From positions 124,001 to 188,000 of the forward strand of contig JAHLTZ010000028.1 of the NCBI GenBank assembly GCA_025786725.1: a stretch of DNA of 64,000 nt, read 5' to 3'. The stretch is from Syncephalis fuscata S228 (lineage: Eukaryota; Fungi; Zoopagomycota). Each line of letters starts with the position of its first letter. Within the stretch, counting starts at the first letter, position 1. The position numbers were made by a program, and so were the translations under genes. This document shows, in pieces, positions 57,939 to 64,000 of the stretch. Below the pieces are notes generated by a model that was given only the letters and a program-made list of their open reading frames with translations, had not been told where the DNA came from and made no database searches.

Positions 57939-59049
57939 TAACAATAAATAGTTAATTGTTCAAACATATTACTAGTTTAGATAGTATTTCATATTGTTTT
58001 ACAATGGTAAATTTTATTTTATTTTATGTATTAGGTGCTATTGTGTTTTGCCTTCTATATATTTTATTTACCCGTTTCACTCTTTTTTCTTAATACCTTT
58101 AAATATAATTAAACATATATTCATCACTATTTTATGTATAATATTTGTAACGAAATCTATTTGTTACGGAAAAGAATTGTATAATTTTATAAGAATATGC
58201 AATTGTTTTCCCACGACACCTAAATTTAATCTCCGCAAAGTCTATATATTGTTGCACATTTTAAATCTAATAAAAGTTATCTTTATTCCATTATACCTTG
58301 TTTTACAGTTGTTACAATATTACATCCAACATTAGCCAATTCATGTATAATCATTGGTACAATAATGTGATTAATTAGTTATCTTTATTATTGCTTTAAT
58401 ATATATATATATTCTTCATTTAGTCAGATTGGCTATAGAAGAAGTGGCTGTTTAATAAACGACATTTATACCAATTAGATTAATTTTGATCTTACATCAC
58501 AAATATGCCCAACATGCAATAGTAGAATATTAGAAAATAGAAAAGATTATTCAGATGCAATAATCCATGCTGTACATAGATGCAATAACAACAAATGTGG
58601 AATGACATGGAATTACAATCATATAGCTTCTATTAATATTTGATCAATTTTTCTACACATGGCCAACAATAATAATCAACCTCAAATATCTCAATGAAAT
58701 CAAATAGTATGTTACATTGTTTATTTAAATCAATTTATTAACAACATTTTAATAGAAAGTAACATATTTTTTATTATATATATTACTAATGTTGTTTTCA
58801 TTTAAATAAAAAACAATTATATAGCATAGTATTTTTTTACAAATAATTGCTACTTTTTATTGAGTATCGTACCATTATTTATTTTAAATTATAAAGAAAA
58901 AAATTAAATAAAAATACACAATGTCTATTTGTAATAATCCAAGTATAATTTTGTTAATTTCTGGCTATTTATTGCATATAACAAGTATGCTACAAGCCAC
59001 TGTAACACTAACAGGATGATTAATACTCAAAAACTTATGCAACTAATAT

Positions 59050-60361: not shown

Positions 60362-61578
60362 GGCAGTATATATATAAAATAATAGTACAAAAGTATTTGA
60401 ATAGGACAGTTGGCCAATTATTCACGCCCTTGGTCATACGTCTGGCGCAATGGTGTGTTATTATAGCATTTTAACGGCCTTGAATTATCGTCACCAAGGG
60501 GCTGTGTTATGTACTAAATATCCAAGTGACACAATGAATACACAGTTTACTTGGTGACTACGTGTACATGTAAAGCTTTCTTTTGTTTACACTTAAGCTC
60601 GCATATAGAAGCACGAGTATAGCTTGTTTAATAAACAAAAATGCCTATAATAAATGCTACTAAAATTTTATTCTACTGAATTGAAGCGCAACGTTATTTT
60701 GTGTATCTAATAATAATAACAGTTTATTACGCTCTGCTCAAATAATGTATAAGCAATTTCATTTTTCTATTTTAACGTTGGCCACTAATGGACATCGACG
60801 TTGTCGTCAACAAGTATGCAAAATGCTGTCACATGCTTGCCAGTATCTAATGACGACAAAATCATAAAGTAAGCATAATGTAATACATGAAGCTAAAGGC
60901 TTTGAGAATGGATTGCTGTTTTTTGACAGTGCTCATGCGTGTAAGCAAACCAAAAAACAACCATTGTCATGCTTCACTATAAATTGAGTGGCAATCGTAA
61001 GCTCAACGCAATTTTTCCAGCTTGTTTACACGTCACTATTTCTTCATTCGATTGTAGCTTTGATTAAATTTCTTACACACGAATTTATTTAGTAAGCATC
61101 GTGTTGCTCGTACGTCCGTTCTATCTATCGCTGGCTTCTATGGTCAACCTCGCTATTGCTGGCTGGTCATCGACTGATTTGGGCGTAGAAGGTCGGCCTA
61201 CTGGTAAGCTACAATACTGCGCGTTTAAACGTTCTAACTTTGATTAATGCCAATAAAAAGAATCAGCAACGCAAGACGGCGTAAGAGTCAATAGTGTCTC
61301 AACACGGGAAGGAGTTCGTGTTAACTAAGGTTTTGTACTCGCTGGTGTAAAAACAAAGAAGCCAGCACTAGCGCTATACCACTTGGCTTTTGGATAATAG
61401 TTTCAATTAGTCTTGTGGCATATGGACACACACAGAATATCATGGTTGTTTCCAGCTGCTTGAATCAACACAGATATTGTAAATAAACAATCTTTAACAA
61501 CAATTGTATTCAATTAGAATTTTTCTAGCCCCATTATTTATTAATGATGCTATGTAATAGGCTAATTTGCTAGTTGAA

Positions 61579-62700
61579 CTATTGTTGTTGACGAGCATAG
61601 TGTGCCGCTACCGCTTCTTGCACTCTACGTTCCATTTCGTAGGCAGCTGTTAAATAACGTTTACGTTGCTTACGCATGTAATTGTACATTCCCCACAGGC
61701 CTAGTTGTGCAAATTATTTGCAATTAATCAGCCGTTGATTTTTTTTAATTAGCATCCACCTACCAAATGGATAATACATCAGTATGGCAATGGCCGCCAC
61801 ATAAGATACAAATCCATAGTCGGCCTTGATATAGTTGAGGCCAGTATAGATTTGCATTGCTTCGCCAAAAGCACCAATAGGATATAGTACATAAAATAGC
61901 GAATAGCTAATATCACATCAATGCTTATCAACAAGGTGTGCTTTATTCATCGTCTAGCACTTACCGACACCAAGTAAGCGTCAAAGGCGGGCCGGCATCA
62001 GTAGCATTGAATATATAGTAGAAATATCTTACTATCTCGGAGATGGACCATGTAATGGCCATCATCGTATAGGACCAATGTTGTTGCACCTCAGCCGCGC
62101 CCAAATTACGACTGATCAACATTACAACCAAAAAACGCACCAGTGTTTGCATAGCTGTAGTGGCCACGCCTGCCTTTACCAATCCTAAATAAAATTAGTT
62201 GTTAACCAAGCCATTTGTCTATACTATTGTCTTGTTTACCAAATCCTGCATGAGCAATCTGTGAATACACAAACCAACAATAAAGCACCACGATTAGCAG
62301 TTAATAGCAGTAACCTATAGCGCTATTTACCTCTAAACAGGCAGTAAGAGTAAGAAGCTGAACCCAGCTACTAATGACACTATAAGATGTCCATATGGCT
62401 TCTCAAGCCCGGCCGATTGCACATAGCCGCAAAACACGCCAAAAACAAACAGCCAACCAAACACGAAAGACCGTTGTAGCCGACCAAATATATACGAGCT
62501 GTATAACAAAAGGTTTGTATTATAGATTCATTTATGAGCTAGCAACTTAGACACTTTGGCTTACCAGTGTTGCTATTAAACCAGGAACTAAAAGGATTCT
62601 TTTTGAAGTTGGGAACAGGACGTTCCTCGTTCATTAGAGCCGATATAACATCAGACTTGGAGGTCGGTGCCGGTGTTTGTTGGGTTTTCCGTTGTGACAT
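61579..62700 (-). CDS. PHS1: Very-long-chain 3-hydroxyacyl-CoA dehydratase (PTPLA/HACD)
   Basis: LEIAHAGFG|LVK, WSISEIVRYFYY, LTWCR|YSLFYVLYPIGAFGE, YYPFG|LWGMYNYMRKQRKRYL. Confidence 0.9.
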
Positions 62701-63008
62701 GGTGAATAGAAAGTATAGGCGATGTACAAACAAGCACACAGATACGCTATAGTAGCTATAACTACGTATATAACTAATACATGGATAGACGTCATTTTTT
62801 GATCACGTGAGCATCTTGCTCAGTATTGCGCAAATAAGCAGCAAGATCCAGCTTGTAATCTTTGCACTACATATTACTTATTGCATAATTAGTACTAGCT
62901 AATATTGATGCTGTTATTTAATGATTACTATTTAGTAGTTTAAAATAAAATACTATCATTATTGGTTATAATATTTTTGATTTTAAAGTTGATAAACTCC
63001 AAGAAATA

Positions 63009-64000
63009 TTAGCTTCTTTGAAACCGATCCGGTATAATACCACTCAATGTAGACTACCAAGAATATGTTTAATTCAAAGCAGCAGCCAAGTCACGATTCC
63101 ACAATTTTGCGCCGATAAAAGTTTCATAAGTTTTTTTACAATCTTGGTTTGCGCAGCTACAAGCAATTTAGATGCAAGAATAAAATATTTATTTTGTGTT
63201 CAGTCTATAAATTATAGTATCATAGAAGCCCATGACACTTTACTTTTGGATTATTGCAACGCTGATACGACGTGGATTATCGACTATTTTAAATGTTTCT
63301 AAACTTTGAGATTGACAAGTAGGACAGGTCTTAGAGCTGTTGTATTTATCAGTTAAAAGCACATTAAAACACTCTTTTGAAGCATACGCTTAAGCCAGCA
63401 CCTCAAATAGGTTTTTGAAAATTTACATGACTTGTAGACCAGCTACCAAATACCAAGTAGCATTACTATCAAACTTTGATTTAAACTTATTGACAAGCTT
63501 TTGGTCAGCTTGCTGTCGTTAATGTACAAAAATAGTTTTAGTTTTTTGAACAGCTAGTTTTGTTGATAGGATCTATATTTGTTTGATAAGTGTAATATGG
63601 TGCAAGATATTGGCTGGCAACAGCACAGACGGCAAGATATTCTTCAAAATTAGATAAATTAACAGATCTGGTTTGACATTAAGACAATAATATTTTTTCT
63701 TTGAACATCGGGATAGTTTGCCTTCAATTCCAATCTGATTCTGCAATACTTCTTGTCCCCCGGTAGCAAAATGCCTTTGATTTGAAGTATCTCTGTAGGT
63801 CATTGGGTCTTGAATGGTGCCGGATTCGTGCATCCAATACATCAAGTCTCTTCTTTCGGTATCAATTAATAAACACTTGTTAGCAGTTAATTTTATATTA
63901 TTTCTGTCAATGTCGTTAATATACTGATATCATATCTATCTTTTTTGAATTTCTTTTTGGATTATAGCCTGGTTTGAATCTGTCTTTGGTGCTCTTGTTC
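63009..64000 (-). mobile_element. Decayed Fanzor (eukaryotic TnpB-family RuvC nuclease) gene, transposon relic; 5' part outside the window
   Basis: Hand translation across frameshifts: KCLLIDTERRDLMYWMHES (RuvC-I), FKKLKL..YINRQQAD..L, VFGSWS, PI*G.GLKRML, LTDKYNSSKTCPTC (RuvC-II + Zn), NPR, KCHGLL[intron]CANQDC, WNRDLAAALN (RuvC-III), IPDRFQRS*. Confidence 0.85.

Follow-up and report, generated by a model that had tools for sequence, protein, structure and literature searches.

Fungal Fanzor1 genes, including genomes that carry both full-length and partial copies, have already been published (PMC3627910, PMC10432273, PMC10711439), and partial or decayed fungal Fanzor loci have been described (PMC10432273, PMC3627910). 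SpuFz1 is encoded by a solo Fanzor ORF in an element of ~2.1 kb that carries no transposase, and the host genome holds full-length and partial copies; the loci have 30-nt inverted repeats and encode intact proteins that are ~82% identical, and ghost loci are also present (PMC10432273). The catalytic residues of SpuFz1 are D383, E541 and D606 (PMC10432273). PpFz1, an intact protein, cuts DNA using a 5′-ATN TAM (PMC11423790). TnpB (IS200/IS605, IS607) and Fanzor2 share a split RuvC domain with a TNB zinc ribbon between RuvC-II and RuvC-III.

We analysed a 64,000-nucleotide stretch of the Syncephalis fuscata genome (hereafter the window). Its minus strand at 62960-64000, continuing past the window end to ~64945, is very probably a pseudogenised solo Fanzor1 element (probability about 0.93). 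An earlier note on this DNA had reported a string of TnpB/Fanzor-like motifs here, and three-frame translation of the minus strand of 62900-64000 reproduced all of them with the same order and coordinates, those of the two Asp codons included: CLLIDTERRD, LFKKLKL...YIN / RQQADQKL, YLVFGSWS, PI*G, TDKYNSSKTCPTC, KCHGLL and WNRDLAAALN. In this reading LFKKLKLFLYIN is followed, in another frame, by RQQADQKLVNKFKSKF. The longest start-to-stop minus-strand ORF overlapping the stretch has 90 aa (63573-63845), which confirms that the ORF track holds only a 90-aa fragment.

A Pfam search of the relic pieces gave a sole match, that of the CPTC piece to PF07282 (Cas12f1-like TNB domain), at 17.8 bits and below the cut-off of 26.3; the identity of the locus was therefore pursued through relatives. 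The longest open piece in any family copy, 175 aa at L002:1590-2114, matched 357 proteins at E≤1e-3 in a library of 1.84 billion proteins, aligning with residues ~350-550 of fungal proteins of 550-800 aa whose sources include S. plumigaleata, Coemansia, Halteromyces and Bifiguratus. The full-length homologues matched PF07282 below threshold only, and they carry PF26935/DUF8286 in precomputed tables. Profile A1, an alignment of 25 full-length fungal homologues, has the consensus motifs IDPGRRD, GxWSA, HEPxRGxG, IDExxTSxxCPxC, CHGLLxC and NRD. When the window and the 8.5 kb beyond it (72.5 kb) were searched as six-frame pieces, 3123 in all, A1 matched 16 collinear stop-free minus-strand pieces running from 64817 down to 63072 (best scores E 4.4e-15, 4.4e-10, 1.3e-7, 4.7e-7 and 4.1e-7), which span profile positions 5-76 and 210-615. 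Besides one other, unrelated relic, no A1 match with E < 0.3 was found among the six-frame pieces elsewhere in the 72.5 kb. The absence of a RuvC/TnpB/Fanzor profile match had been named beforehand as refuting the assignment; a search of the genome with A1 returned the window locus at E 4.9e-40 on read-through, with the N-terminal part at E 1.6e-10.

Searches against the PDB placed the family within Fanzor1. A1 matched PpFz1 of Parasitella parasitica (9cf0, E 6.4e-222), SpuFz1 of Spizellomyces punctatus (8gkh, 7.3e-137) and GtFz1 of Guillardia theta (9cer, 1.2e-44), and no Fanzor2 or TnpB chain in the PDB was matched at E≤1. With phmmer, PpFz1 was the best PDB match for the relic's own 118-aa (E 0.02) and 49-aa (E 0.0029) pieces; the 175-aa sister piece matched PpFz1 at 5.6e-14 and SpuFz1 at 9.9e-10. 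Similarity to characterised Fanzor1 proteins along WED/REC, RuvC and TNB was thus found by way of A1, from relic to profile to structures. In the alignment with SpuFz1, D383, E541 and D606 fall on an Asp (63861-63863), a Lys (63345-63347) and an Asp (63090-63092) of the relic. The profile and PDB matches and the alignment of catalytic residues indicate that the locus is a Fanzor1 gene remnant; the TnpB/Fanzor architecture proposed earlier holds, and is specifically that of Fanzor1. The features of the window copy are as follows.

63919-64000 (minus strand, on to 64065 past the window end): WED-domain piece, FQGSIQTDSVVVSIL; A1 positions 321-356, E 4.7e-7
63576-63929 (minus strand): longest open piece, 118 aa, with RuvC-I, KCLLIDTERRD; A1 362-416, E 4.4e-15
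63541-63678 (minus strand): RuvC helical segment, SVNLSNFEEYLAV...; A1 446-478, E 3.8e-4
63406-63553 (minus strand): three overlapping frame pieces, LFKKLKLFLYIN, RQQADQKLVNKFKSKFDSNAT and YLVFGSWSTSHVNFQKPI; A1 486-535, E 5.4e-4 and 0.013
63403-63405 (minus strand): TGA stop where PxRG has its conserved Arg (PI*G), by direct reading; A1 consensus ePiRGvG
63243-63389 (minus strand): RuvC-II and first zinc-ribbon Cys pair, LLTDKYNSSKTCPTC; A1 546-583, E 4.4e-10
63223-63276 (minus strand): end of exon 1, NPKVKCHGLL, in another frame; A1 582-597
63157-63220 (minus strand): degenerate spliceosomal intron, 64 nt, from a 10-copy alignment
63072-63167 (minus strand): second Cys pair and RuvC-III, CANQDC...KLWNRDLAAALN; A1 601-615
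63009-63071 (minus strand): decayed C-terminal tail, with stops at 63069-63071 and 63054-63056, then SGIIPDRFQRS
62960-63008 (minus strand): remnant of the 3′ non-coding tail, from alignments of 12 copies

In the WED piece the TDG motif of Fanzor1 is altered to TDS. The RuvC-I Asp is kept in LIDTERRD, where the family DPG has become DTE (PG to TE). The RuvC-I piece and the helical segment lie in different frames and are therefore separated by a frameshift, and two more frameshifts part the three overlapping pieces that follow. The RuvC-II Glu (motif DE.xTS) is not kept: the relic reads TDKYNSS, with Lys (AAA). Sister copies on contigs C68 and C223 have GAG (Glu) at this position, so the change from Glu to Lys is a loss in the window copy and not a family trait. 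Two Cys pairs of a zinc ribbon lie between RuvC-II and RuvC-III, the first as CPTC (63300-63320) and the second, once the intron is removed, as C-C-ANQD-C. The RuvC-III Asp is kept in WNRD. The ancestral stop is at 63009-63011; other copies and A1 run in the same frame to ...P.rFqR.

Removal of 64 nt joins the KCHGLL frame exactly with the CANQDC...WNRD frame, and the joined reading HGLL-x-C-x-N-x-x-C is that of PpFz1 and SpuFz1. Among the 10 aligned copies the donor GTACTA is kept in eight, and most have a TTCTAAC or TTTTAAC branch site and end in TAG or CAG. The conserved splice signals, the exact frame join and the PpFz1/SpuFz1-like reading identify the 64 nt as an intron. In the window copy its signals are mutated, the donor from GT to AT and the branch site from CTAAC to CTTGC. 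The S. plumigaleata homologue is intronless (a gene of 1896 nt for 631 aa), and the S. fuscata relics thus document a zinc-ribbon intron of one Fanzor1 lineage that is absent from an intronless congeneric homologue.

The relic is cut by the window end. The extent given earlier, 63009-64000, needs correction here, because homology with the C223 copy continues to the equivalent of 64945 (C201:188945). The relic is ~1.97 kb long, with ~945 nt past the window end, and the first A1 profile position falls at ~64817. A1 positions 77-209, present in C68, are absent from both the window copy and C223, which share an internal deletion of ~400 nt; it takes out ~130 REC residues. Reading along the pieces requires at least 12 frame changes, of which seven fall within the window, and in-frame stops occur at 63403-63405 (the conserved Arg), 63069-63071 and 63054-63056. 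With these frame changes, stops and the deletion, there is no open frame for a complete protein, and the window copy is non-functional. The earlier description of it as dead was borne out by direct reading of the Glu-to-Lys change, the Arg-to-stop change and the many frameshifts.

The relic is flanked by a PTPLA gene on one side and a 7TM-like gene on the other. The former, of the PTPLA family (3-hydroxyacyl-CoA dehydratase-like), occupies 61572-62750 on the minus strand and has several short introns; the two share a strand, and the relic stops ~250 nt upstream of the gene. RNA data came from the only public run that contains part of the stretch, a small one kept as contigs, which are spliced, so the run is RNA-derived. 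For the two flanking genes the coverage by spliced contigs is free of mismatches, and it is strong for the PTPLA gene. The relic has traces only, in the form of one low-depth, mismatching 151-nt contig that probably comes from another copy. This coverage pattern agrees with a silent relic, although a run of this size cannot show silence.

Fanzor1 relics are common in the S. fuscata genome, where the family of the window copy alone has 29 or more DNA matches (80-87% identity). All family copies are broken and all contain stops. This number, together with the deletion and 5′ boundary shared by the window copy (contig C201) and C223 in unrelated 5′ flanks, upholds the earlier claim that the family was once active in the lineage; the pattern of these two copies is consistent with a deletion derivative having been mobilised in trans. 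The suggestion that intact copies may lie elsewhere in the genome gained no support: no intact gene of the window relic's clade was found in the S. fuscata assembly, and the 120 best full-length relatives retrieved for the closest intact homologue included no S. fuscata protein. Substitutions between copies, from pairwise comparisons only, are mainly transitions (ts/tv 3.8), and the CpG observed/expected ratio is 0.56-0.84 in the copies vs 0.97 for the window, indicating CpG-depleted relics. An S. fuscata protein annotated as 'hypothetical protein' (KAI9593358.1, P0001, 151 aa) is 100% identical to the L002 piece (L002:1590-2114, C190:176221-176745); it is an open relic fragment and not a usual gene product.

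Other Fanzor-like sequences were seen in the same genome. A more distant sister family of Fanzor1 relics is represented by L026 (C24:576686-578532, minus strand) and L027 (C316:40546-42359, plus strand), both broken, with longer open pieces of 137-144 aa, IDPHRRD/IDSHRRD and the N-terminal REC region kept. A second, unrelated Fanzor-like C-terminal fragment lies in the window at 58479-58640 (plus strand), reading LTSQICPTCNS...HRCNNNKCGMTWNYN; it has degenerate catalytic positions (A1 558-616, E 0.0025) and resembles a 131-aa ORF in L031. PF07282 has 87 matches in the S. fuscata genome, mostly short C-terminal-only pieces. L014-L025, L030 and L031, which carry such matches, were considered as intact genes and rejected, because only the C-terminal 80-90 profile positions match; nothing was found upstream of these fragments within 1.5 kb, and these short relics form a set of their own.

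After the stop, other copies share a tail of ~150-200 nt with a short palindrome near its end. In alignments of 12 copies the window copy departs from this tail after ~50 nt, and its BLAST homology to other copies stops at 62975-63005. No other copy contains the segment 62760-62960, which lies immediately upstream of the PTPLA gene and does not belong to the repeat. When the ORF end and tail of seven copies were folded together with RNAalifold, the covariation term was -0.07 kcal/mol and lent no support to an omega-RNA. The 5′ boundary at ~64945 is common to the window copy and C223, and 3′ ends differ between copies. No convincing inverted ends or TA duplication were seen at the 5′ boundary or the 3′ ends; no more than a short GCATTGC core is common to the two ends, directly oriented and perhaps a chance match. 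Copies were compared with ~1.5-kb flanks, so that element ends and outer cassette limits are incompletely defined. Alignment of the copies, which the earlier note had proposed as a route to element ends and TSD/TAM, yielded none that could be defined for the S. fuscata family. The partner transposase envisaged beyond 64000 did not materialise, as only the N-terminal half of the same relic lies there. The interval from the 5′ boundary to the next gene contains neither a transposase nor any ORF of at least 90 aa, and the transposase model tested, Tc1-type DDE_3 (PF13358), had no match in the S. fuscata genome.

At other loci the relic has a different setting. A 5′ truncation point equivalent to 63816-63820 of the window is common to at least seven loci, where a subtilase-like gene that has an fn3_5 domain is followed ~180 nt downstream by the truncated relic. 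Because homology between loci runs on through the gene, gene and relic were duplicated as one unit; most other copies are segmental duplicates, not independent insertions. The units and the inverted arms found are listed here.

L005-L008 and L010-L012 (C109, C13, C317, C66, C235, C2): units of subtilase-like gene and relic
L003 and L004 (C112, C35): units of subtilase-like gene and relic
C13, 331893-332595 and 335436-336138: inverted arms, 99.9% identical
C112, 756097-756764 and 760493-761157: inverted arms, 98.2% identical
C318, 22854-24405 and 72458-74003: inverted arms, 97% identical, 48 kb apart

The duplicated unit stops near the end of the relic's 3′ tail, and similarity falls to random within one 150-column alignment window just past it. 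Between loci the gene part is 59-88% identical, and relic plus tail are mostly 83-96% identical. For the gene exon, Nei-Gojobori dS is ~0.37 and dN/dS 0.56-0.85; the relic distance is ~0.13-0.19. The relics are thus more alike than adjacent synonymous sites. Simple neutral co-duplication predicts otherwise, which leaves room for conversion or constraint. Two near-identical cassette pairs were also observed, C109 vs C13 (99.3% over 2.4 kb) and C66 vs C317 (99.7% over 3.6 kb); whether they stem from recent duplication, haplotigs or assembly redundancy, such contig pairs inflate the copy count.

The subtilase-like gene of C13 and C112 has a partial relic in inverted orientation on its upstream side and a 5′-truncated relic downstream. 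The arms of these two loci are ~85% identical between loci and have the same inner boundary. Near-identity within a locus combined with divergence between loci is concerted evolution of the inverted arms, for which gene conversion, later spread, a composite mobile cassette or selection may account. It is conceivable, though improbable, that dead Fanzor1 sequence was recruited to form the arms of cassettes that enclose subtilase-like genes. If this were so, the loci would represent a composite mobile or invertible protease cassette made from Fanzor ends, or targeted conversion seeded by an old element, and the window copy would be an unrecruited sibling.

Several other explanations of the locus were weighed against decay of a Fanzor1 gene. 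Single motifs are short and the Pfam match is below threshold, as a chance resemblance in AT-rich DNA would have it; however, 16 collinear profile matches on the same strand, with E down to 4e-15 per piece and 5e-40 on read-through, and the lack of any comparable match elsewhere in the 72.5 kb speak against chance, a reading already refuted by the profile and PDB matches. A Fanzor2 or prokaryotic TnpB relic was rejected because A1 hits only Fanzor1 chains in the PDB at E≤1 and no TnpA-like ORF lies nearby. It is hardly credible that the locus is a live, intron-rich Fanzor1 gene whose frameshifts are unrecognised introns or assembly errors. The family does have one real intron, and one sister copy is annotated as a protein of 151 aa (KAI9593358.1); however, pieces that differ in frame meet or overlap, in the DNA as well as in the profile, so that there is no room for introns. 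An Arg has become a stop, the catalytic Glu a Lys and the intron donor AT, and ~130 residues are gone. Transcript contigs agree with the flanking genes over hundreds of bases, with 0 differences, indicating that the assembly is accurate here, and the relic is without meaningful transcript coverage.

We also considered co-option of the relic or its family, either as cis-regulatory DNA of the PTPLA gene or as recombinogenic arms or ends of the subtilase-like-gene cassette. The window copy ends ~250 nt upstream of a well-covered PTPLA gene, relics at other loci are conserved beyond the synonymous sites of the adjacent gene, and arms that are 98-99.9% identical within a locus and ~85% identical between loci keep the same inner boundary. 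The window copy, however, has neither an inverted partner nor an adjoining subtilase-like gene, and it has lost the tail that others keep. Conservation between copies is even along the relic, with no focus on motifs, and gene conversion alone could explain the pattern. Co-option is therefore highly improbable, and a decayed Fanzor1 copy is the preferred reading of the locus.

The history of this decayed copy may be outlined as follows. The ancestor encoded a protein of ~630 aa with WED/REC, a split RuvC and a zinc ribbon. By homology with PpFz1 and SpuFz1 we infer that its activity was RNA-guided: like these two proteins, it would have bound an omega-RNA transcribed from the 3′ end of the element and cleaved DNA beside a short motif, acting as an omega-RNA-guided, TAM-dependent endonuclease on a non-autonomous transposon (PMC10432273, PMC11423790). 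The family spread in part as a mobile element and in larger part passively with the subtilase-like gene. The window copy has been disabled by loss of ~130 REC residues, by frame changes and stops, by the Lys in RuvC-II, by decay of the intron and by loss of all but ~50 nt of the tail, and is now inert DNA between the PTPLA and 7TM-like genes.

These results add a species of Zoopagomycota to the fungi with known Fanzor1 debris, and for annotation they define ~30 loci to be masked as one decayed Fanzor1 family. The relic family in S. fuscata offers nothing usable for genome-editing tools; intact relatives occur in S. plumigaleata, Coemansia and Mucorales. Wider interest attaches only to the co-duplication and concerted evolution of relic arms at subtilase-like genes, outside the window.

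In comparison with known systems, the relic differs from TnpB and Fanzor2 in that no Pfam TnpB-family model reaches threshold on the pieces tested and the N-terminal WED/REC is of the Fanzor1 type. In contrast to SpuFz1, the S. fuscata family yielded neither an intact copy nor clear inverted ends. The nearest intact relatives among named genomes are the S. plumigaleata proteins KAI8056096.1 and KAI8056028.1 (631-632 aa), intact solo Fanzor1 ORFs of the same homologue set with only ~35% identity to the S. fuscata family. Their elements, ~4.2 kb long and 93% alike (L058:3319-7514 and L059:3301-7537, JAIXMF010000003.1), have 37-nt inverted ends starting CAGTG/CAGGC with TA on both sides and contain no transposase ORF; they look like non-autonomous Tc1/mariner-type carriers. 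They also hold ~1.7 kb of non-coding sequence upstream and an acidic repeat ORF right after the stop. Ends of this type were not recognised in S. fuscata. PpFz1 (PDB 9cf0-9cf3) is the best solved relative, both by its match to A1 and as the top PDB match of the relic pieces. Its large RuvC insertion (FRI domain) is a gap in the profile alignment, and the window copy differs from it in being broken, in its RuvC-II Lys and in its zinc-ribbon intron. PpFz1 and the relic family nevertheless share the same motif order, IDPGRRD ... GxWSA ... IDE.xTS.xCP.C ... CHGLL.C ... WNRD, and the host of PpFz1 is, like S. fuscata, a mycoparasitic early-diverging fungus.
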